Of a DNA stretch of 64,000 nt, positions 1,120 through 43,850 are shown one piece after another. The position numbers and the translations under genes are program-made. A model generated the notes under the pieces. It did no database searches and was not told where the DNA came from. It was given only the letters and a program-made list of their open reading frames with translations. Source of the stretch: Penicillus capitatus (Eukaryota > Plantae > Chlorophyta). The stretch lies in assembly GCA_965649825.1 (NCBI GenBank), contig OZ287706.1, positions 620,001 to 684,000 on the forward strand. The letters are read 5' to 3'. Within the stretch, counting starts at the first letter, position 1, and each line of letters starts with the position of its first letter.

Positions 1120-2902
1120 GTTTTGTCGTGCTGCAGAGTCTTAAAAAGTTAGTTGGCGCATTTTCTATAAACGAGCTCACTATTGCTGATGGGACATATG
1201 GTGCCACGCATTCGCGTTCAAGGAGACGACCTTCTCTGAAGCTGTTCATAGACGAAAAGGAAAGACAATCATAATTAACAGCGTTGACAGAAAACGTGCA
1301 TTCTTGGGGATCGGGAAGGCGTCCCCTTTACATCAAGGAATGTTAGTGGACTCTGAACAGCATCTAATCATTCATACCACATGTGCATTGTCCAACATAC
1401 TGTTCACCTTGAGAGACGCATGCCGTTTATTTTTGCGCAAGACGCTTTCCTCTGTGCGTTTATTCAAGGTAGATGATGGATCGTGTTTGTATACACTGGA
1501 TATTGTCGGGGATCGTGTGTAAGAGCAGTTTCTAAGACAGCCGAGTCTTTACGCGCCGATACGACAGAAACACAATCGGATTTGATGCGATACGAACAGG
1601 AGTTATTACAAGGGAGAATGTCCGCCTTATATACCCAGGTTGGTTACAGTTTTCCTAACCTTAGTACCTAACAGTCGTGAACTTCTAGCGCAAGTCGATA
1701 AGCACATGCCTATCGTTATGGGGAAGTTAGCTCGGGAGCCGACATCCGTCGCGACCGATGGTCAGCGCGCCTGGATGGTTAGACTACGGCTCTCCTACTT
1801 CCGGTGGTTTACAGACGGCAGTTAAACGCTACACCTCCTACAGATATCGCTTTGTGTTTTCCAGCATTCTCGGATATGACATTAGTGTGGGGCCGTTGAT
1901 TTGACCCGACAGATTGATAGGATAAACGAAATGACGTTTCGCATTGAAAGGGCAGAATCATTGTATGAAGAACTCCGTTCTTTTTAATCCGCTTCAAGTT
2001 TTAACGTGTGGACCGAGGATGGCCCTCACAACAAGCAAACGAATGCTTCCGTCTGTTAACACACAGCGTCGCGCTGTTGAATGACGATCAGATTGTAAAG
2101 ATTGTTCGCAACGGCAGCTTCTCTGCGAAATGAAGATGACGACATGTCCGTTGTTTACTTGACTGCAACTAAATCGTGATCACAACTGGACTTCATACTG
2201 ATTGAAGAACAAATAGGAGTAAATAACGATCTAGAGAATTCTTGCAAAACGTATGTCGCTTTGTGCCACGAACTGATATTAAGCCATTGCCGAACGAAAA
2301 AAGCAGAGATCCAATTCCTTAAGTGACTAACGAGAGTCTAAAGAGTGGTCTGTCTTCGAGGACAGAGCGAGAAGATAGAACTCTTTTTGTGTAATGTGTC
2401 ATCCAATAAAAATTGCTAGAGCGCTTTTCGAAAGCTTGAGGACACTGGTCGATTTAGTATATAATACAATGCTTCCTAAGGAATGTTCAAAGCAGACGAA
2501 TATCTGAACGACGTGAAACGAGCAAGGTTATTTTCCTGCAGCAACGCGTGCACCGCCCCCTCGCGTCTGTCTATTCTGACGGTGAGTTGGTGTCACGTGA
2601 GTTCCGCTATAAAGTCGCAAGCAGAACGAACGACGTGTTAGCCGGCCCGATCGTGACGGCGGCATCGACTCGAGATATGCGCCTCACCTCCGCGCTGTCA
2701 TCTCTTCTGCCAGGATAGGCAAGCGAAGAACAGAAATTTGCTAAGATGTCTTGTAAAGATGCCAAGTGAGCGCTGTTGAGTGCCAAACTCGGCTTCAGGT
2801 AGCTATCTTAAACGGTCACGTCATAACTTGGCTGGTTGATCGAGAAGTCCAAGGAATAGTTTCGTTTTGAGAATGGAATAAGAGAACAAAAAGACTCGTG
2901 AA

Positions 2903-4706
2903 TTAAACATCGTCGCCTGCACAACGCTGCCGTTCCATGGACTGTCGGACCTTCGCTTTCAGAGAGGCGCTGATCGGGTCATGTTTCTTCGGCAAGGCCA
3001 TCCATCCCTGGCGCACACGGCAACGAATCTCCGAAAACCGTTGCCATTTTAGATCCTCCCGCGGTCGACAGTCGTAAAAGGTGTACAGCAGATTGTCTCT
3101 GGGGCCCACGCCAAGGGCCGGGACGACGGTTGGGATGTCGTGTATGAGTTTCACTGCCAGTTCTCCCGGGAGAGAAAACTTTCCCGAATCGCCCCTGGGC
3201 GTCTTCATGATGTCCTTCGTCGTGCCGTCGGCGAATCTGATGTGCGAGAGCTTAGTGGCAAAGGACAGTATGTCGCGATTGACTTTCTGCAGCAGCCCGC
3301 CTCCCATTCCAAAGGCACAGTTCTGTGCTGTGTAACCCGCGTCCGTCATTTTCTCGAGGACGTCTCTGATTTTGCGCATCGACATTCCATCTCCCTGAAT
3401 CACGCCGCATTGTTTCAATATGCGGTAGCCCTTGGAATTGACCTCCGATCCAAAGACCTTCTCTGCGGCCCTCAACGCCTAAGGCATCGGATAGTGTGCG
3501 ACCTTGGAGCTTTCTTGAAGAAGCGGTTCACCTGGAGAACGGTTTCGACTGGATTTCCAGAGTCTGGTCTGAGAACCATGAATCCTCCTTTCTCGAGTTT
3601 GTGGGTAGCGATCGCGGGGAGAACACTCTCCAATGCATGTACATAGTCATAGCTGTCCAGGACGCAAGAGAACATGCCCGAACCATGACATTCGATCATT
3701 GATAAGAGTGCCGATTTCTCAGAATCCCAAGACGTCATCACACTGTGCTCTGTTGAAGGAATCGATTTCCCAACGGGCTCTCCATTGTTTAGGAAAAACT
3801 GTAGCACGATGTTGGCTCTCTTATTGATTTAACAGTGCCGAACTTGAGCATAGAAAGCAGCTGGCATCGTTGCAGTGCCAGTGAAATTGAGCAGATGCGC
3901 ACAGCCACCCACGATAGCTTGATCTGTTGTTGTGCATCCACGAAATCCAAAGTCGTGTAGACGCGACTCGATGAGGTACTTCGCTTCCGGATCGACCGTC
4001 TCTTCGAAGAAGTACTCGATGAGGTCCCTCGCCCTTCTCGACAGGGTCGCTACGGTTGTTGGATACCAGATCATCGTCAACATCGTCTCCAGAAACGTAC
4101 ACAGCGGCGCGTAGCATCCTTCGGCCGTGATCTAAGGGGAAGCAGTCCTTCCTCGCCCACACAGACGACTGCGGCTCACTTGATAGACAGGGACGTGGGG
4201 GTGTGTGCATGTCCCGTCCTCCAGGGCCTGAAACTTGATGGGAAAGTAGCCTGCAGGCACGGGAGGTCAGTGGATGGTCTCGACGGACAAGCAGCTCTCG
4301 CCGTCGTTCTCCTGGATGAACTTCTCGAAGAGCTCCTTGGGGAAGGGAAACTTCAAGTAGTCCGGCGCCCTGTGCTGCCTGCATCCGAAGTTACTTCGGT
4401 CGCGAGAGTCGTCGATCACTTGAAGAATTCTTCCGACTCTTCGACGTCGCGCATCGTCCACTTTCGATTGAGGACCTGCTCGACGAGAAACCGAACGCCG
4501 AACACGACGATGCGCGTGTCCTCCGTGTCGTTGTCGAATCCCGTGCGGAATTCGCCGTACTACGGAGAATGCGTCGGCACGCAACGAGATGGAGTGTGGC
4601 GGCGCACCGCCACCATCTTCGTGGCCTCGGGGTACTGCTCGAAGTGCGTGGCCTTGTAACTGTCGGCCATGACGCTCAACGGAATCGACTCGGAGAAACC
4701 AAACAT
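2903..4706 (-). CDS. NAMPT: Nicotinamide phosphoribosyltransferase, copy A (spliced)
   Basis: Motifs ADSYKATH, LHDFGFRG, TEHS, LDSYD, LRPDSG, IQGDG, GGGLLQKVNRD; stop TAA at 2903-2905. Confidence 0.9.
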
Positions 4707-4851
4707 GGCTTCGACGATGAAAATGAAACGTGGCCGTCTATCGCTGGATTCTATCCAGAGCAGCGTCGTACATCGCGTGGCCTCTTCAGATCTCACGAGC
4801 TCCCACGGCGAACGCGATCGACTTCGCGAACAGGACTCAAAGAAGCGTTCG

Positions 4852-4945
4852 TTAAGCGTTGAACACTGCCCTTAAAGGAGGGGCACGCATCTGCGTGAAA
4901 TCAAACCGATTATCGAGATCCTCGTCGATTTCGCCAACGATGGTC
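4852..4945 (-). pseudogene. Orphan copy of the last exon of LSM8, carried with the NAMPT duplication
   Basis: Reverse complement of 22662-22755 with a few substitutions (TIVGEIDEDLDNRFDFTQMRAPPLRAVFNA*); the preceding intron is also copied but earlier LSM8 exons are absent. Confidence 0.85.
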
Positions 4946-6029
4946 CTGGACAACCACCTCATCGTGCCATGAAGACATTCCGCATAAATTCCTATACCAA
5001 AAGTGGCCGTTAGAAGCGTGTCGTAATTTATTTGAAGTTGTCATGCCCTTCGTCTACATACAGATGATTAACCAGGAAACAAATATCTTAAATGCAAAGA
5101 CAAATTATGTTTGCAATGGCGACGGTTTCCACAGAACAATGATAAAGCGCATGCTCTCCAGCCATTCTTTGTGCACTGAGACGTGCTTCAATTTTTCATC
5201 GGTCTTCAACCAAACTCCTTTGACATCTACGCTCACTCTTGAGTGCATTGAACACAGCGAAGTGCATAAGACAAACGCACTCTTCTAGCTGCGCCTCACG
5301 CAAGTCTCGATGACTTAGAAGACTGAAAAGGCCTTAAAGCGTTCATTCATTTTTAAAGAGGTCTTATCAGACTTACCAGTAGAGCGTTGAGGCTGCTTTG
5401 GACATGTGATCATTTCTACAGATGTTATTTGATTAGCACCAAAATAGATGCACTAACTACCCTCGACGATTCAAGAACGGAGAGTGGACTTCATCATCTG
5501 ACCGAACATGAGTAAATATCGCCAGCAACGGGAACACTGCTCAGTAGAAGCCTCAAGGAAGTGTTTCGCTGAAGCGCACGAGTCGCTGGGCTTCTTCTTT
5601 CGAACAGCATTTTCTTGTGTATAGCAAACCGTCTAATGCACGCCAAGTCTACCCAAAAGACGCGCGTTCGTATACCCGAGCCACTCTCTTGAGCTCACTG
5701 CTAACTCATTGTCGAACTCTTCTGCATCTATCGAACCACTTGACGGAATGGCGAAGACAAATTCGCCTCCGACTGAAACCGTAGATGCACTATCCTTGTA
5801 ATAACACACCAGAACAGTAGAACGGTCCAGAGCACGACAGGGACGTAACAACAGTTCCTCTAAGTCCCATCAGAATCCCGCGTCCTCGCGTTTCAGTCCA
5901 CACGTGGCATTAACTGCTCCCGTTTGTTACAGTGATTTCCATACTGTTTCCTAGAAGGTATCTGCTTCATCTATAAAGCCGGATAGGAGCGAGGCATTTA
6001 CGCCGTGCAACCGCGTAGTTGTTCGCAAA

Positions 6030-9000
6030 ATGCACCACTACTCTTTCTTCACCTCGCTGCTGGCGTGGACGATCCTAAGCGCAGTATCCGTCGACTGCTC
6101 GGCTGGTGGGTTTCTGCAGTTGCACAACGTGACCGCAACGACGTCGTCTGCTAACGAAACACTATCCTCGGGCTTTTACGCCTCGCCTCAAGTGTCTGCT
6201 ACGGACTTGGGACGCAATGCATCGATCATCGCGGAGGGTCAGACGTTAATGTCCGTCACAGAACACTCACATGCGGCGACTTCTGGCGTTTCAACGATTA
6301 CAGCGAAGCAGCACGTGCCTCATTCCGTTCCGCAGCGTAAAGCGGCCCGTGTGTTGCACCAAGAAGCCATCGTAGACGACGAACCGCCGGAAACAAGTCT
6401 GACGTTTTTGTTCGTTTTCATGCTGCTGGTTGACTCACTCTTTTGTGTCTCCGTGTGACCAGGCGCCGCTTGTTCGCTGCCAAGACGCAGCGTCGACGTA
6501 TACTTAAACCAAACGACGCGCGTGTGGCTCCTTGACCAGACCGTCCTTAATGACATCGAAGACGACGTCCAAGTCATTATCGACTGTACTCGACCTGGCG
6601 ATATCCTTCTGTTCGACACACAGCGACGAATCCGACCTTCGTCGAGCATCGTTCTACGTTGGCCGCTGACTCTGAGTGCTTACGTGGACGAAGCCGAATT
6701 CGAGAAAGGTGATATTCCTCGTTCCAAAAAGAAGGCAGCCTTTACCTGTCCCGACACAACACAGGGGATCTTCTCCGTCAGGTAGGAATCCGCTCTCTAC
6801 TGTCGCGCGTCGAACTCGTGTTCAGATCGGAGAGCGTCGTCTTTGCAAACCTAAAAATCAAAGGCTGTTCGCTGAACGCCTCCGCAGCGTTTGGTGCCAT
6901 ATTCGAAGCGGAGGAATGTCCTCCATCCAATCGCACGAGCAGCATTCAGCTGCACCACGTCAGCTTTAGAAAGAATGTCTTGAACGACGCTGCATGTCTC
7001 AAAATGCGCTCGCCTTCCTGTTCAGCGCTGACGCTGATCGACGTTCAATTCGTGAACAACAGCTGCAGTGGTAGATGCGGTGTCGTCCTGGCCGCCGAGA
7101 ATCGACTTGAGGATGTCCACGTGGACTCCACGCATCTTTCTGACATAGACCGAGTCCAATCGAACGTATTCTACGGTCCTCGGGGCTCACAGATCAATGT
7201 CACTAGGATGGTAGCCACCCATAACGAAGCGGAGATCTTTCGCGTGGAAGGAGGTTCCCTGACACTGATAGAATCTGAGCTGTCGAGCTCCGAGGCCACA
7301 ACGGCAGCGAACCATACACGACAAACTGGTATTTATCTCAAAGATTCCGCCGCCAGAATAGAAAACTGCAAGTTTCGAAACAACAAAGGAGAAAATGGAG
7401 CCGTTCTCTTCGCCGTGCGATCCGTAGTGAACATCTCTGCGTCTTCCTTTGAAAGCAACGTAGCGAAGAGAGGTGGTGCCCTCTGCCTCTCGGAAGACAC
7501 CAGTGCCTCCATATCCAATTGCACGTTCTTGTCGAATGCTGCCTCGGATGGAGATGTCAGTGGCGGAGGCTGTCTGTGGTGCGAGGACGGAACACTGGTT
7601 GTCGCCAACACGACTATGGAGAAGTGCTCGACGTCTGGAGCAGGTGGAGCCATGGTTTTGCACCACACAGTAATGATGTTGTCAGATCTCGAGATCTCAT
7701 CTAGTCGGGCCGGAGAAGATGGCGGCGGGATCTTCATGGCAGACTCGTTCGTAACTGGAACAAGACTGACTCTGAGTGACAACAAGGCTGGCGACGAAGG
7801 AGGCGGCATCTGTATGGAAGACAAAAGTCGTATCTCTGTGACAACTGGAACGATGAGAAACAACAGCGCGCGTTCTGGTGGTGCTGTCTGCGCCAGAACA
7901 GACGTCAGCAGCAGCTTTAGGAACATCCGTTTTCTGGAGAACGCAGCGATGGAGAATGGCGGATCCTTTCGTCTGTACGGATCGACCATGGATGTGAAGA
8001 ACTGCACCTTTGAAAGTGGCCGTGCAGAACACGGAGGATTCATCGCCGCCAGAGACAACGCCGCCATGTCCATCAGCCGCTCAACCTTCAAGAACGGCAC
8101 TGCTCAGTACGGTGGATGCGTGCACATACAACTTGGAAACTGCACTTTCATGGATGTGGACTTTCGAAAGTGTCGTTCCATCATCGACGGTGGAGTGATG
8201 CGCATCGCCAACGCAACTGTCGCGATAACCAACGCAGCTATGATTTCGAACCGTGCGGATGATGATGGTGGATGCGTCTTTGCCGAGTTCTCCGACGTCT
8301 CTGGACGTCAATGGATTGTAGATGACAACAGTGCTGGAGATCACGCTGGAGCTGTCCTCACTAGGTTCTTCTCCAACTTCTCTCTTATCAATGCTACCTT
8401 CAACAGGAGCTCGGCAGACAACGGAGGGGTTGTCTTTTCAGAGTCGAATTCGACTGTGCGCTTTGTGAATGTCTCTTTTCAGAACAGCGATGTGGTCACG
8501 GAAGGCGGCTCTCTTTACATTGACGCATCCAATGCGACATTCCGTGACTGCCGATTCGAGAAAAGCCGGGCAGAGAATGGCGGATTCATCTATGCCAAGA
8601 GGGACTCTTCGATGACCATCGACGCAACAGAGATGACGCGTGGCGATGGAGATCGTGGAGGATGTCTGCGCATGGTCGGAGGGCACTTAGTCGTTCTGAA
8701 CTCGACCTTCCAATACTGTAGATCTTCTGACGACGGGGGCGCCTTGCATCTGATCGACTTGACAGCAGACATCTCAAATTCAAACCTGTCTCTGAATCTT
8801 GCCCTCTCCGGCGGCGCAGTTTTTGCCGAGCACGTGAAACTCGCTGGAAGTGGACTGGTTGTTGAAGACAACAAGGCAGATGGCGTCGGTGGAGCGTTAC
8901 GTTGCGCACAGTCCACGATCAGCGTCAAAAACACTCGATTCCAAAACAATACTGCCACCAATGGCGGTGCCGTGCATCAGATCGCCTCTGCGATAGGGAC

Positions 9001-12000
9001 ATTCGTCAATGTGACCTTCTCGCAAAACAACTGCTCAGAGAACGGTGGAAGCTTGTTTGTGTCCGGTTCTGAGTTGAACATGGCCCGAGCGGAATTCGAA
9101 GATGGCAGGGCTGAAAAAGCTGGTGCGTTTATTGCAACAGCCTCGAACAGCTCAGTCATACTAAAGGACGTACACATGAGAGGCGGCCAGGCGGATAACG
9201 GCGGCGGCGTTCTGATCACGGACTCTTCTTTCGAAGCAAGCAAAATGCAGATCTTGGACTGCGTGGCGGCGTCGAGTGGTGGGGCCTTTCGCAGTGAAAA
9301 CAATCCCACTGTCGCGTGCACGGATTGCAAATTCGAAGGCAATGTCGCGGCTACACACGGCGGAGCATTCTCTTTCAAATCGAGCAACTGCCAACGTCAC
9401 GAGTTCAGACTCCAGAGCTGTCTGATAAGAAACAATACAGCTCAGTATGGAGGTACCGATTCCCACATGATTTCAGGAAGGGGCATCTTCTTTGCAGGAG
9501 GATTGCACTTGATGGACAACCGTCAAGCCTTGGCATGCCCAGACACGCTTTCGCACTCTCCATCCACCATTCTTGTGGACTCAAACTTCTCGAACAACAG
9601 AGCCGAAGAAGCTGGCGGCGCCGTCTTCGTCAGCGATTTCCAGAATCTGCACATCAAGTGTCCATCTGCACAGAAGGCAACGACACGCGTCGGCACGAAA
9701 CGATCGTCGCCGTCACCTCCTAGTATCAATCGAACAAACGGCGGCTGCAGCTCGTGGACAGATAACAAGGCAGAACTTTACGGTAACGATATGGCATCGT
9801 TCGCCTCTCACGTCGTCGGAAGTGTCGAAATCGATAATAGCAGCATTGCCATCTCAGAAAGAGATGACGACTACACCATAGAAGACTACAGAAGTGGATC
9901 CACTTTTCCGATCATCACTCTGCGAGCTGAGGACGATCTTGGCCAAGCGCCAGCTATCGGGAGAGACAGTCGTGCCATCGCCTCTACCGTGTCCTCTCCA
10001 GATCATCTCTTCACAGAGAACCAGAGCCTTCTGCTGTCGTCCGAGAGCGTGGAGCTTCGGAAGACCGAATTCGCGCGGCCTGGCGTGTACACGATCCTCT
10101 TTGAATTCGACGAAGGTCATCTCAATAGCTTCCGACTGAAAGTGATTGTGCAGAGCTGTGGGATCAACGAAGTGCCTTCTGGAAACGGGACATTCTGCGA
10201 AGCATGCAGCGCCGCCGCATTCAATTTCCGTCGGGAAGAGGATGCGGATTGCTCTCCATGTCCCGCGGATGCAAACTGCGAGACTCGAGTGATCCTTCCC
10301 AATAAGGGACACTGGCATCAGACACCCTGTTCAAAGCACATCCAACGATGCATCGCCTCCGAGGCGTGCGACAAGGAAGAACGCATGGGACATTTAAAGA
10401 ACGTCACTAAAGGCATTGAGTCATGCGATTTCGACGAAGAGATGGTCAAGAATTACACAAACGCCCAATGCGAAGAAGTCCGACTCTCTTGTGTTCTCTA
10501 TTATCGTTCTAAGGGTCATGATGGTCTCAGGGACATGAGGGACCCCTTTGTGGATCCTGCAAGGAGTCCTACGGCAGATCCAGATCGCATCTTTGTCAGA
10601 AGTGCTTTCCGCGTTTCGTCAGTCTCGTTCTGGTTTTTCTTTTCTTTCTTGTTTTGATGGCCTTGTCTGGCATTACAATAAGAAGCAATCTCCTTTCCGT
10701 CGTCTCTAAGAAGCAACAGCTACAGATACATCAACTCTCCGTCCTTTCATCCAAAATGATACGCCTTCCAGACGAGGAGAAAATTATAGAGATGGCTGTC
10801 CAGGAACAGGCATCAGAAGAACGGCAGAGACCGGAAAGCAGTCAAACGCATGACATCGATGGTCAAAGTTCTGAGGAGGGCGATCAAACCTCCGAAGAGG
10901 TAGAGCTCGCTAAGTGGAAAGCGATCGAGGTCTTTAAGGTCAGCAGAGCCTGTACACTCTCCAGTCGACGATCCCTATTGCCTTGCAGATTGGCGTCAAC
11001 TTCCTCCAGGTGACTGCCATAGCCATCGCCGTCAATGTGAACTGGAGTCTCAGCATGGAGACGCTCTTCGAAGCGGCAGGTGCGCGAGATTCTATGTCGT
11101 GGTCCGATGCACAAAGGAATTCTGTGCTTTGCAGAGTTCATGAGTGGTATTTCATCCGAAGCCGTCACACGTGCCATTGACTGTCTGGTTCCAGCCAACG
11201 CCGCAGTGGAACGCACTATCATCAGCGCACTTGTCGATGCATCGCACCCACTGGCAGCCATCTTCTCATTCGCCGCCGGCTGGCTCATCATCAAGTTTCG
11301 GCGGGGAAAGGACTGGATGTACCTTATGAAGAAGGTCGTCCTCAGCGCCCTGGTCGTTTTGTACATGACCTACATCTCTCTGAGCAAGGCTTTTCTGAAC
11401 ATCCTGAGCTGCATCGAGGTCCACGACTCCATCGTCGTCGGGAAAGATCGCAAGACAGATTACTGGTCCCTCGACACCAGCGTCGAGTGCTACACAGGAT
11501 CGCACGCTCTACTGGTGGGACTCGTGGGCTGGCCACTGCTCATCGTTTTTACCTTCGGTTTTCCTATGGCCATTGGTTACCTCATTATCAAGAATGTGGA
11601 GGAGGACTACAAGGCAGGATGGATTTATGATGTCTCGGGTTTCCTCTACCGATCCTACAGAAAGAAATTTGTTTTCTGGGAGTCGATGATTATGTTGAGG
11701 AAAGCCGTCCTGGCTGTCGTCGTTGTCTTTTCTTATCCTCTAGGTGTCCATCTCCAGCAGATCCTTGCCGTTTTTCTTTTGATTCTCGCGCTGTACCTGC
11801 AAACTGTCTTACGTCCATATCGTTTTGAATTCGACGTTTTGAATGACATAGAAAGTGCATCTATTCTTGTCTCCTTGGTGACGTTTGTCTCGGCCATCTT
11901 CTTCAGCGAGGATCGTGTTTCTTCTGCTGTCCGTGTCTTGGTAACTCTGTCGGTCATTTTCTGCAACGTTGGCCTCTTCTTGTTCATTTGCATTGTCTTT

Positions 12001-22248: not shown

Positions 22249-22755
22249 ATGGCGGCAGGCACAGTGGAACTCACGCCTTTCATTGATAGTACTTAAGCAC
22301 TTCGACGTCGACATCCGGTTCGGCACCGCCGTGTAGGTGTCGTTTGCGTCCTGACGAATGACGGAAGAATTATTGTTGTGAGCGGCAATCTCGACCTACA
22401 GCGGACGGAGGAGCGTCGTGTGCTGTGGTAGGGCTATCTGCGTGGATTCGATCAGATGACGAATCTGGTCTTGACAGAATGCCACGAACGGGTCTTCTCA
22501 ACAGAAGTGAGTAACGGGCGCTCACCACTAAGACGTTTGAGAGATGCTGTGCCGCAGAGCGGCGTGGAGCAGGTTGCACTGGGAACATATCTCGTCCGAG
22601 GAGACAACGTGTAAGGAATGCACACAGAATGTCTTCATGGCACGATGAGATGGTTGTCCAGGGCCATCGTTGGCGAAATCGACGAGGAGCTCGACAATCG
22701 GTTTGATTTCACGCAGATGCGTGCCCCTCCTTTAAGGGCAGTGTTCAACGCTTAA
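22249..22755 (+). CDS. LSM8: U6 snRNA-associated Sm-like protein LSm8
   Basis: VCVLTNDGRIIV/GTLRGFDQMTNLVLTECHERVFST/SGVEQVALGTYLVRGDNV/AIVGEIDEELD. Confidence 0.9.
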
Positions 22756-22807
22756 CGATCGCTTCTTTGAGTCTTGTTCGCGCAGTCGATCGCGTTCGCA
22801 AAGAGCC

Positions 22808-24760
22808 ATGCAGATCGGACGCGTTGTCGCTCGGCGATGCCTTTCGGTCACTTTCGCCGTGGGAGCTCGTGAGATCTGAAGAGGCCACGCGATGTACGAC
22901 GCTGCTCTGGATAGAATCCAGCGATAGACGGCCACGTTTCATTTTCATCGTCGAAGCCATGTTTGGTTTCTCCGAGTCGATTCCGTTGAGCGTCATGGCC
23001 GACAGTTACAAGGCCACGCACTTCGAGCAGTACCCCGAGGCCACGAAGATGGTGGCGGTGCGCCGCCACACTCCATCTCGTTGCGTGCCGACGCGTTCTC
23101 CGTAGTACGGAGAATTCCGCACGGGATTCGACAACGACACGGAGGACACGCGCATCGTCGTGTTCGGCGTTCGGTTTCTCGTCGAGCAGGTCCTCAATCG
23201 AAAGTGGACGATGCGCGACGTCGAAGAGTCGGAAGAATTCTTCAAGTGATCGACGACTCTCGCGACCGAAGTAACTTCGGACGCAGGCAGCACAGGGCGC
23301 CGGACTACTTGAAGTTTCCCTTCCCCAAGGAGCTCTTCGAGAAGTTCATCCAGGAGAACGACGGCGAGAGCTGCTTGTCCGTCGAGACCATCCACTGACC
23401 TCCCATGCCTGCAGGCTACTTTCCTATCAAGTTTCAGGCCCTGGAGGACGGGACATGTACACACCCCCACGTCCCTGTCTATCAAGTGAGCCGCAGTCGT
23501 CTGTGTGGGCGAGGAAGGACTGCTTGCCCTTAGATTACGGCCGAAGGATGCTACGCGCCGCTGTGTACGTTTCTGGAGACGATGTTGACGATGATCTGGT
23601 ATCCAACAACCGTAGCGACCCTGTCGAGAAGGGCGAGGGACCTCATCGAGTCCTACTACGAGGAAACGGTCGATCCGGAAGCGAAGTACCTCATCGAGTC
23701 GAGTCTGCACGACTTCGGATTTCGTGGATGCACAACAACAGATCAGGCGATCGTGGGTGGCTGTGCGCATCTGCTCAATTTCACTGGCACAGACAACATG
23801 GCGGCGGCTTACTATGCTCAGGTACATCTTACGTGTAACCAAAGATGGTCTATGTTCTGAGGGCAGTTTCATTTGAATTTCGGCGAGCCGATTGGAAGTT
23901 CTATTCCTGCCACCGAACACAGTGTGATGACGGCTTGGGATTCAGAAGAATCTGCTATAATTAATGTGATCGAACGCTATGGCAATGGTCTTTTTGCATG
24001 TGTCCTGGACAGCTATGACTATACACATGCATTGGAGAGTGTTCTCCCCGCGATCGCTACCCACAAACTCGAGAAGAGAGGAATCATGGTTTTGAGACCG
24101 GACTCTGGAGATCCAGCCGAAACCGTTCTCCAGGCGAGACGCCCCTCAGGATCCGAGGTAGTCGCAGACCGTTTGATGCTTTAGGCATTGAAGGCTGCAG
24201 AGAAGGTCTTCGGATCAGAGGAGAATTCCATGGACTACCGTTTCCTGAGAAGATGCAGCGTGATCCAGGGAGATGGAATGTCGTTGAGCAAGATCAGAGA
24301 CGTCCTCGAGAAAATGACGGACGCGGGTTACACAGCACAGAACTGTGCCTTTGGAATGGGAGGCGGGCTGCTGCAGAAAGTCAATCGCGACACACTGTCC
24401 TTTGCCACTAAGCTCTCGCACATCAGATTCGCCGACGGCACGACGAAGGACATCATGAAGACGCCCAAGGGCGATTCGGGAAAGTTTTCTCTCCCGGGAG
24501 AACTGGCAGTGAGACTCATACACGACATCCCAACCGTCGTCCCGGCCCTTGGCGTGGGCCCCAGAGACAATCTGCTGCACACCTACTACGACTGCCGACC
24601 TCGGGAGGATATAAAATGGGAACGCTTCTCTGACATCCGCCGTCATGTGAACAGAGAATGGAGATATCTGCCGAGGAAACACGATCCGATCAGCAAGTCG
24701 TTGAAGACAAAGATCCAACAGCATATGGAACAGCAGCAGTCTGCCGATGCCACTGTTTAG
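22808..24760 (+). CDS. NAMPT: Nicotinamide phosphoribosyltransferase, copy B (ATG 22808 with a candidate targeting exon, or ATG 22959)
   Basis: Same motifs as copy A, including NFTGTDN with the Asp219 equivalent. Confidence 0.9.
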
Positions 24761-24787
24761 TTTAATTTCAGATCGTATCTTTCTTGT

Positions 24788-35040: not shown

Positions 35041-35415
35041 CATATCTCGAAAACACATATGCAATAGCTCTCTCTGACGCTGATGATGATCTCGCGCCCT
35101 CGCCCGATCGCAACGAAGGCGTCGACGCACGAATCGCTCTCTGCTATTAACGATGGCGTTGTGCTGCTGCCTGGGGGTGTCGTGAGTCGTTATGGTGATT
35201 CGACGGGAGGAGATCTGTGGAGCTCGGTGGTTTGCGCTTTTCTGTGTGACGACTTTGTCGACGCGGGTCCTTTGTCGTACCGTTGTGTACCTTCCAGCTC
35301 AGCCGTCGCATCATGTCCAAGAGAGCTGCGGTTTCCTGTTCTGTGTTCTCGGCATCGCGACAGCGGCGCGCGCTTTCATTTTTCCCACGGCGACGCACGT
35401 CGCGTCACAACATCG

Positions 35416-37012
35416 ATGAGCGCAGAGGAGAAGAAATCTTCGGAATTCGTCATCCAACCGACGAAGACCGTCCCGAAACTGGACACGTCCAAGTGGCCAT
35501 TGCTGCTCAAGAACTACGATCAGCTTCTCGTGCGAACGGGACACTACACACCGATTCCCTGCGGCCGAACGCCGTTGCGAAGATCGCTACCGGACTATAT
35601 CAAATACGGCTGCCTTAATCTCGACAAGCCTTCCAATCCGTCATCCCACGAGATCGTGGCGTGGACGAAACGCATTCTTCGTGTGGAGAAGACGGGACAC
35701 AGTGGGACACTGGATCCCAAAGTGACGGGCTCGCTGGTGATCTGCATCGAGAGAGCGACACGACTGGTGAAGGCGCAACAGGGAGCAGGCAAAGAATACG
35801 TATGCCTGGCGCGTTTTCATGCCAAAGTCCCCGGCGGCGCCGCCGAAGTCACACGTGCTCTGGAGAAACTCACGGGTAAAGTGGGTCTGAACCATGGGTC
35901 AGATATGGACATCGGCCGTGTCTGCTGCATAGGTGCCGTTTTTCAGCGACCGCCTTTGATCTCCGCCGTCAAACGACAGTTGCGTGTGCGGACGATTTAC
36001 AAGATGACGCTGTGGGAGTACGATGAAGACAAGAATTTGGCACTCTTTTGGGTTTCGTGCGAAGCCGGCACGTATATCCGGACGCTCTGTGTACATCTGG
36101 GTCTGATCCTTGGCGTCGGCGGCCATATGGAAGAACTCCGTCGCGTCCGCAGCGGCATTTTGGGTCGATCTGATCATCCAGGCAAAGATCTCGATCGCCA
36201 AGGCGTGTGCATTTCTAGGCGAGCGAGACAATATGGTGACCATGCACGATGTGCTGGATGCTCAGTGGCTGTACGATAATTTCAAAGACGATAGCTATCT
36301 GCGACGCGTCGTCATGCCACTCGAGGTGCTGTTGACGAATTACAAACGTATCGTTGTGAAAGACAGCGCCATTAATGCCTTGTGCTACGGCGCCAAGTTG
36401 ATGGTCGTGGGCGTCCTGCGCTATTCGGCGGACATCGAAGTGGATGACGAACTCGTGCTGATGACGACCAAAGTTCAATGCGCTGTCCGTCTCCCGAGGC
36501 GATCGGCGAATTCCGTGTAGGGCGAGGCGATCGCATTGGGCATTGCCCAGATGAATAGTGCTGTTATCGCGACGGTCGATCATGGCTGTGCAGCGAAGCT
36601 CAAGAGGGTGATCATGGATCGCGATACCTATCCTCGCAAGTGGGGATTGGGCGTCTACGCTCAGCGCAAGAAGCAGATGATTGCAGAAGGCCTGTTGGAT
36701 AAACACGGCCGTCCGAATGACAAGACGCCGCCGGAATACCTGCGCGCGATCGTTCCGGAGAACGTCCCTGTCAAACAGGAACAGATGGACGTCGTTCAGG
36801 AGGAGGAGAAAACAGAGAAGAAGCCAAAGAAGCGCAAGAACGAAGAGACAGAGCCATCGCCGAAGAAACCCAAAAAGAAAAAAGAAAAGAAATCGGCGGA
36901 GCCAGATGGCGGCGGCGAGATCGAAAGCAAACGGAAGAAACAAAAGAAAGAAAGCAAGCAGAAGAAAGAAAAGAGCGAAGGGGCCGCGACAGGAACAGAC
37001 GTCGGTGTTTGA
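35416..37012 (+). CDS. CBF5: H/ACA RNP pseudouridine synthase dyskerin
   Basis: [34 protein letters not shown] domain, Lys-rich tail. Confidence 0.95.
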
Positions 37013-43309: not shown

Positions 43310-43850
43310 CATCGCGATGATGCAAAAAGAACTGGCCTCCCGACTAAGGAGAGCCATCTTCACAGAAACGTTAGAAGATAGGGCAGCATTCGACAAGAAC
43401 GTGCAATTGGATATGGAGGCACTGGTGCCTTCCGAGAGGTAGAGGGCATCACCTCTCTTAGCTACGTTTCTTTTAAAAGAAGACGCAGTGATGTTCATTA
43501 TGGATCACAAGGAGAAGAGAACGGCTCCATCTTCTCCTTTGCTGTTTCGAAACGTGCAGTTTTCTATTCTGGCGACAGAATTTTTGAAATGAACGCCGGC
43601 CCGTCGTGAATGTTCGTTGCCGTTGAGGCCGAGACGCGACATTTCAAATTCTATCAGCATCAGGGCGCTTCCTTCCACGCGAAAGATCTCCACAAGGACA
43701 TCGCCAGGTCAAGTGCAGTTGACAAGATTTGGACGCCGTCTTCTGTGCCATTAAAGACGGTCTGGTCAAGGAGCCACACTCAGATCGTTTCGTTTGAGTA
43801 CGTGTCGACGCTGCGTCTTGATAGCGAACACCGAGGCGAATTGTACGACA
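43310..43850 (-). pseudogene. Internally deleted, decayed fragment of the PMP-like surface-protein family
   Basis: Reverse complement aligns to 6470-6607 and then jumps to about 7230-7545; contains an in-frame TGA. Confidence 0.8.

Follow-up and report, generated by a model that had tools for sequence, protein, structure and literature searches.

Two NAMPT genes in inverted orientation

The 64,000-nt window analyzed here (Penicillus capitatus assembly GCA_965649825.1, contig OZ287706.1, positions 620,001 to 684,000 of the forward strand; coordinates below are those of the window) contains two genes of the nicotinamide phosphoribosyltransferase (NAMPT) family, which we refer to as copy A and copy B. 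They lie in inverted orientation, 18 kb apart, with unrelated genes between them, and copy A encodes an alanine where human NAMPT has Asp219, which defines the specificity of the enzyme for nicotinamide. Both gene models were built from splice sites and homology. Each gene is divided into seven exons by six introns of 41-53 nt, and its coding sequence (CDS) of 1518 nt specifies a protein of 505 residues; the positions and phases of the introns are the same in the two copies, and neither contains a stop or a frameshift. The two proteins differ at 66 of 505 positions, and their residues 1-168 are identical, which would be compatible with homodimers or heterodimers.

GC-AG splice sites are found in three of the twelve introns of the pair: the donor of intron 3 is GC in both copies (4301-4251 on the minus strand and 23364-23414 on the plus strand), and the donor of intron 6 is GC in copy B (24134-24184, plus strand) and GT in copy A. 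Upstream of copy B there is a stretch of 58 nt (approximately 22795-22852, plus strand) that is absent upstream of copy A, in a region that is otherwise 95% identical. Through this indel the two copies could differ in their regulation.

Family placement and retained catalytic features

Both proteins contain the Pfam domains NAMPT_N (PF18127) and, following it, NAPRTase (PF04095), each scoring above the Pfam cut-offs. The best PDB matches of both copies are all NAMPT (residues 12-425, E-values from 5e-75 to 1e-45), and the 120 best homologues are all of the NAMPT type, at 52-67% identity. Copies A and B fall inside that set as sisters, with NAMPT and not with NAPRT or QPRT sequences; the best named relatives come from green algae and early-diverging fungi. 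The equivalog models for nicotinate phosphoribosyltransferase (NAPRT), TIGR01513 and PRK09243, give copy A only 26-32 bits against cut-offs of 297-503, whereas the NAMPT-type model PRK09198 gives it 390 bits. By descent, copy A thus belongs to the NAMPT clade and is not a NAPRT.

The catalytic and substrate-binding residues, listed according to PMC3665594, are kept in both copies (in human numbering, Asp16, Tyr18, Phe193, Arg196, His247, Asp279, Arg311, Asp313, Gly353, Asp354, Gly383, Gly384, Arg392, and Lys400). They include all ligands of phosphoribosyl pyrophosphate (PRPP), ribose and phosphate (Arg196, Arg311, and the six residues from Gly353 to Lys400), as well as the aromatic clamp for the pyridine ring (Tyr17 and Phe190 of the two copies, which correspond to human Tyr18 and Phe193). 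Copy A has the histidine that is autophosphorylated and its supporting aspartates (His243, Asp273, and Asp304; human His247, Asp279, and Asp313). A preliminary description of this DNA had reported that copy A retains the phospho-His, the DSYD, RPDSG, and GDG motifs and an intact frame; all of this was confirmed, and the motifs are present in both copies. The feature that sets the copies apart is Asp219, which is hydrogen-bonded to the carboxamide and confers specificity for nicotinamide: copy B has it, and copy A does not.

The specificity residue and a second change in the base pocket

Asp219 is the textbook residue that separates salvage of nicotinamide by NAMPT from salvage of nicotinate by NAPRT, and it is a contact for many NAMPT inhibitors. 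In copy A, the motif NFTGT within GGCAHLLNFTGTATMPAAFYAQ (minus strand) occupies 3888..3874, and the next codon is GCA for Ala (3873..3871); in copy B, NFTGT within GGCAHLLNFTGTDNMAAAYYAQ (plus strand) occupies 23777-23791, and the next codon is GAC for Asp (23792-23794). The peptides AHLLNFTGT-A and AHLLNFTGT-D, to which the preliminary description had drawn attention, are thus present as quoted, with the codon in question inside the interval 3850-3900. Its proposal that this residue is the equivalent of human Asp219 is borne out by phmmer alignments to the human NAMPT chains in PDB (natural numbering), where residues 209-217 of the query (LLNFTGTDN) pair with residues 212-220 of the human enzyme (LVNFKGTDT).

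To place this residue in the family, we pooled the homologues obtained when cluster representatives were searched exhaustively with those of two word-indexed searches, and aligned them to a hidden Markov model of the family. The Asp219 column is nearly universal, with Asp in 371 of 376 informative homologues, Ala in three, Ser in one and His in one. There is a second difference: residue 240, at the position of human Ala244, is Ser in copy A and Ala in copy B. The contrast between IPSTEHS and IPATEHS beside the phospho-His had been read correctly before, and it corresponds to A240S; this column has Ala in 371 of 374 homologues. Among the 39 columns that are at least 98% conserved (in up to 383 homologues), copy A breaks only these two (D216A and A240S) and copy B breaks none, which argues for a targeted change rather than general decay. 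Because A240S is the sole other near-invariant column broken by copy A, a coordinated remodeling of the pocket becomes more credible. The pocket and tunnel differ at further positions, namely those of human Thr220 (Thr in copy A, Asn in copy B), Ser275 (Ser in A, Ala in B), and Arg349 (Gly in A, Ser in B).

The two codons at position 216, GCA and GAC, are two bases apart, so the alanine is unlikely to be very recent, and they open a densely diverged block. Together with the near-universal Asp column, these observations make the Ala/Asp difference more than chance or error. The near-identical segments of approximately 1 kb and 0.3 kb that the copies share could in principle mislead an assembler, and the difference might then be an artefact of assembly or sequencing or a chimera of paralogues. 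This is hardly credible, given that the two-base codon difference stands among dozens of others, including introns that have diverged fully, that frames and splice sites are perfect in both copies, that the coverage is approximately 41x according to the name of the contig under which the dyskerin ORF of the window is on record (ctg340479_41x_l, ENA metagenome assembly ERZ25074695), and that the copies are inverted and separated by 18 kb with unrelated genes in between.

Gene conversion, age and selection

The arms of the inverted repeat formed by the pair are 97% and 94% complementary, and nucleotide identity between the copies (2903-4993, minus strand, versus 22614-24762, plus strand) is very uneven along the gene. 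It is 95% in the upstream region, 97-100% in exons 1-4, approximately 98% in introns 1-4, and 93% in exon 5; it then falls to 38% in intron 5, 78% in exon 6, and 59% in intron 6. Exon 7 is 86% identical overall and contains an internal block (codons ~346-445) with approximately 98% identity. Homology stops at the stop codon, and the 200 nt downstream cannot be aligned. The near-identical blocks, whose introns are near-identical too, are recent gene conversion tracts, whereas the near-random introns 5 and 6 beside conserved exons show that the duplication itself is ancient. The edge of the 5' conversion tract falls within one codon of residue 216: codon 215 shows a synonymous difference only, and dense divergence begins with codon 216. 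The unconverted block that follows (Table 1) holds Ala216, Ser240, His243, and the DSYD, RPDSG, and GDG motifs.

We estimated synonymous divergence (dS) and the ratio of nonsynonymous to synonymous divergence (dN/dS) by the Nei-Gojobori method, pairwise between copies A and B and block by block. In the converted blocks, which cover about two thirds of the CDS, dS is 0.01-0.08 (0.076 for codons 1-214), and dN/dS is uninformative with so few changes. In codons 215-345, dS is 0.75 and dN/dS is 0.22. The unconverted blocks total approximately 190 codons, and their dN/dS of 0.20-0.22, a calculation that the preliminary description had proposed for the divergent exons, supports constraint.

When the 66 differences between the copies were polarized with outgroups, 16-19 were derived in copy A and 20-27 in copy B. 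In the unconverted columns, the copies are 71% identical and are sisters, with the metagenomic protein P0001 as the nearest outgroup. In the same columns, the branch of copy A is the shorter one, and 97 of 114 homologues are nearer to it than to copy B. Copy B, for its part, carries unusual substitutions where the family is well conserved (R186S; T217N, at human Thr220; G296R; K330M; G331D; and R468H), and this faster-evolving copy, too, may be something other than a plain housekeeping enzyme. Copy A is the more conservative copy everywhere except at the two pocket positions. By these comparisons, the pair are sisters from an old lineage-specific duplication, both under purifying selection, and copy A is to be regarded as a maintained paralogue with a specifically altered base pocket; it is neither decaying nor the product of a sequencing error.

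It has to be weighed here whether the duplicate is redundant and the change in it merely tolerated or slightly harmful. Under this explanation copy A would have no new function, its apparent integrity would reflect conversion from copy B and residual selection, and it might be turning into a pseudogene. Redundancy after duplication does relax constraint, about two thirds of the CDS are periodically overwritten by conversion, and the proteins elsewhere that lack Asp at this position are lineage-specific extra copies with more changes in the pocket or among the catalytic residues. Yet the approximately 190 unconverted codons are old (dS 0.75-1.26), and still they show a dN/dS of approximately 0.2 with frame and splice sites intact; moreover, copy A is the slower-evolving copy, and only two of 39 near-invariant columns are broken in it. 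We therefore consider this explanation quite improbable, and long-term purifying selection on copy A makes a functional change likelier than decay.

Table 1. Coordinates of the NAMPT pair, of its key codons and conversion blocks, and of a neighboring gene
Feature	Coordinates	Strand	Remarks
NAMPT copy A	4706..2903	-	ATG to stop, 505 residues; model from splice sites and homology
Copy A exons	4706-4608, 4559-4420, 4378-4302, 4250-4180, 4131-3844, 3798-3532, 3478-2903	-	
NAMPT copy B	22959..24760	+	ATG to stop, 505 residues; model from splice sites and homology
Copy B exons	22959-23057, 23106-23245, 23287-23363, 23415-23485, 23534-23821, 23867-24133, 24185-24760	+	
Copy A codon 216, GCA (Ala)	3871..3873	-	Position of human Asp219; plus strand reads tgc
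Copy B codon 216, GAC (Asp, canonical)	23792..23794	+	Aligned to human Asp219
Copy A codon 240 (Ser)	3754..3756	-	Position of human Ala244, three residues N-terminal of the phospho-His
Copy A codon 243 (His, retained)	3745..3747	-	Equivalent of human His247 (autophosphorylation site)
Homogenized 5' block of copy A	3875..4993	-	Spans the upstream region and exons 1-4 plus most of exon 5; partner 22614-23790
Unconverted block of copy A	3410..3874	-	Codons 216 to ~345, introns 5 and 6; partner 23791-24254
Homogenized block in exon 7 of copy A	3080..3409	-	Codons ~346-445; partner 24255-24585; dS 0.014
Diverged 3' end of the copy A CDS	2903..3079	-	Codons ~446-505; dS 1.26, dN/dS 0.20
Dyskerin (CBF5)	35083-36279	+	Best named relatives Coccomyxa and land plants, 72-77% identity

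Possible consequences for base recognition

The point mutants of human Asp219 were reportedly introduced by Khan et al. in 2006, who are said to have concluded that this residue determines substrate specificity. Asp219 is hydrogen-bonded to the amide of nicotinamide, and its equivalent in human NAPRT is Ser214 (PMC4442680). In the Xanthomonas NAMPT, Asp203 makes the same contact, and its negative charge was argued to favor nicotinamide over nicotinate (PMC10907753); the role that the preliminary description had assigned to this residue in binding the amide is thus supported by both papers. In the inhibitor tunnel, Asp219 has the further role of orienting His191 (PMC4186856). In the table of point mutants in a review, human D219S is listed under 'switch the substrate affinity' and A244M, a change at the second position altered in copy A, under 'prevent inhibitor binding' (PMC4919578).

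Tentatively, we favor the view that copy A is an old, maintained NAMPT paralogue that is probably active, has a weakened preference for nicotinamide, and has a relaxed or shifted specificity for the pyridine base. The machinery for phosphoribosyl transfer is intact in it, and the pocket that recognizes the base would have been specifically remodeled. Loss of the carboxylate at residue 216 would abolish the hydrogen bond to the NH2 group of nicotinamide and would also lift the negative charge that is thought to disfavor nicotinate, and the hydroxyl of Ser240, next to the phospho-His, may take its place as a hydrogen-bonding group. The leading candidate for an alternative substrate would be nicotinate, with nicotinic acid mononucleotide (NaMN) as the product, and copy B, which has Asp216, would stay the nicotinamide-specific enzyme. 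Gene conversion holds the N-terminal half of the two proteins identical, including the tyrosine equivalent to human Tyr18. In human structures, Tyr18 is contributed to the active site of the partner subunit.

A more specific version of this proposal is that copy A is a nicotinate-accepting or dual phosphoribosyltransferase, in which NAPRT-like chemistry arose convergently inside the NAMPT clade through the changes of Asp219 to Ala and of Ala244 to Ser, and that selection against conversion of the pocket block keeps the two specificities apart. Stated this precisely, we consider it rather unlikely.

Several points weigh against a shift in specificity. The Ser found in NAPRT at the position of Asp219 does not bind nicotinate itself, according to one structural paper (PMC10907753), so removal of the Asp need not create affinity for nicotinate. 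Human D219A is listed under 'loss of activity' in the review table cited above (PMC4919578), and a preprint describes the same mutant as impaired in nicotinamide binding with significant residual activity kept. The dN/dS of approximately 0.2 is a pairwise value and thus an average over both lineages. No orthologue of copy A was found: a full-length protein search gave a best match of 67% and a search with exons 5-6 one of 69%, both with Asp; a scan of JGI metagenomes yielded one distant locus at 39% identity; and exact look-ups of three exon open reading frames (ORFs) returned no record. These searches were uninformative on conservation of Ala216, since the lineage lacks close sequenced relatives; the best relatives, at 65-69% identity, all have Asp. 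The premises from which the preliminary description argued for an altered base specificity therefore hold, and the idea is plausible; the part of it that names nicotinic acid or another pyridine as the new substrate is unproven, D219A being listed as a loss-of-activity mutant.

The phenotype of human D219A means that the alanine alone predicts weakened use of nicotinamide at least as strongly as it predicts a new specificity. Copy A might accordingly be an attenuated nicotinamide enzyme, of low affinity and high capacity, or a partner of copy B that tunes activity in A/B heterodimers, with PRPP binding and autophosphorylation kept. In keeping with this, human D219A binds nicotinamide poorly with residual activity, and both Xanthomonas D203N and human D219N show lowered activity (PMC10907753). 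NAMPT is dimeric, with each active site built from both subunits (PMC10907753); the identity of residues 1-168 makes heterodimers look compatible, and copy B brings its own unusual substitutions (T217N, G296R, K330M, G331D, and R468H) to such a pair. On the other hand, a purely regulatory subunit would not need the long-term conservation of all catalytic residues that is observed in copy A, in paralogues elsewhere that seem to lack catalysis, His247, Arg196, and further residues are gone as well, and the rare A240S near the base site suggests retuning over simple loss. We regard an attenuated or tuning copy A as the main alternative, possible but doubtful.

According to the preprint mentioned above, an antiviral 'protein phosphoribosylase' activity for which His247 is still required is retained and even increased in human NAMPT-D219A. 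Copy A combines Ala at the position of residue 219 with His at that of residue 247, the combination that was active in this mutant, and it might have a role outside the synthesis of nicotinamide adenine dinucleotide (NAD) that involves no binding of nicotinamide, for example the hydrolytic removal of phosphoribosyl groups from proteins, a function that has been proposed for the human enzyme. This is very improbable: the proposal comes from a single preprint on antiviral activity in a mammalian context, the window holds no hint of such a role, and the retained clamp residues Tyr17 and Phe190 argue that a pyridine is still bound.

Whether its specificity is shifted, as we tentatively prefer, or its activity is attenuated, copy A lacks the specificity-defining Asp219 and for this reason should not be annotated as a nicotinamide-specific NAMPT from sequence alone. 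It offers a natural case for testing the evolution of base specificity among type II phosphoribosyltransferases, and positions 219 and 244 make up a two-residue recipe that is open to reciprocal mutagenesis. Biocatalysts for NaMN or non-natural pyridine mononucleotides might also be modeled on copy A. The pair as a whole illustrates mosaic evolution, in which divergence escaped erasure by conversion only in blocks that contain the differences in the active site. Should copy A prove to be only a weak NAMPT, the case will be of modest interest.

Other features of the window

The neighbors of the pair are a BTB-Kelch gene and genes for a PMP-repeat protein, an F-box/LRR protein, dyskerin (Table 1), and a class II aminoacyl-tRNA synthetase. 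None of the scanned ORFs of the window encodes NAPRT, nicotinamidase, NMNAT, or NAD synthetase, and the window contains neither tRNA genes nor matches to Rfam. A second inverted repeat pair (6471-6611 and 7231-7543 versus 43382-43830) is 83-86% identical and overlaps the 5' part of a 1279-codon ORF (6818-10657) with repeats of the Chlamydia PMP type, which suggests that another gene family has been duplicated in the region.

Comparison with known systems

Human and other mammalian NAMPT proteins (PDB 2GVG, 2H3D, and 5UPE, among others) share with copy A the architecture of NAMPT_N followed by NAPRTase (aligned over 12-425, E-value ~1e-65) and the catalytic residues. The wild-type human enzyme has Asp219 and Ala244, whereas copy A has Ala and Ser. 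The laboratory counterpart of the natural copy A is the human D219A mutant; however, this mutant carries a single change in an otherwise unadapted enzyme, and copy A has a second pocket change and a history of long purifying selection. NAPRT/PncB (e.g., human NAPRT, PDB 4YUB) likewise belongs to the type II phosphoribosyltransferases; its pyridine clamp is aromatic or hydrophobic, and its residue at the position of Asp219 is non-acidic. The residue of copy A is non-acidic too, an ambiguous resemblance since it is Ala and not Ser (Ser214 in human NAPRT), and copy A has the NAMPT-specific N-terminal domain that marks its different descent.

Among the homologues, P0264 (795 aa, a cluster representative) has an insertion of approximately 300 residues directly before the EHS motif of the phospho-His, and both its placement and the surrounding sequence look intein-like.

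Other proteins that lack Asp at this position differ from copy A in the state of the remaining active site. In Diversispora epigaea, an extra copy (P0053, RHZ60515.1) has Ala at the Asp219 position, as does copy A, next to a canonical paralogue with Asp (P0039) that is 89% identical to it; unlike copy A, this extra copy also carries H191Q, F193S, a change of Gly217 to Arg, and GDN in place of GDG. A partial sequence from Racocetra persica (P0336) has Ser at this position and, again unlike copy A, Ser in place of Tyr18 and Asp in place of Glu246. We found no characterization of these two Diversisporales proteins, and such extra NAMPT paralogues look like recurrent divergence at the specificity residue. 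P0147 has His at the Asp219 position and a degenerate pocket, in contrast to copy A. A further NAMPT-derived sequence (locus L001 in Logan SRR28715553, represented by P0250 and P0271) resembles copy A in having Ala at the Asp219 position, but, as we read its exons, it has lost the equivalents of Arg196, of His247 (now Gly), and of the DSYD, RPDSG, GDG, and GGG motifs. It is a multi-exon gene of an unrelated eukaryote (positions 1528-3500 of that locus), its exons are still open, and it looks catalytically dead, a candidate NAMPT-derived pseudoenzyme. Copy A alone, within this sample, has a non-Asp residue at the specificity position in an otherwise canonical active site.

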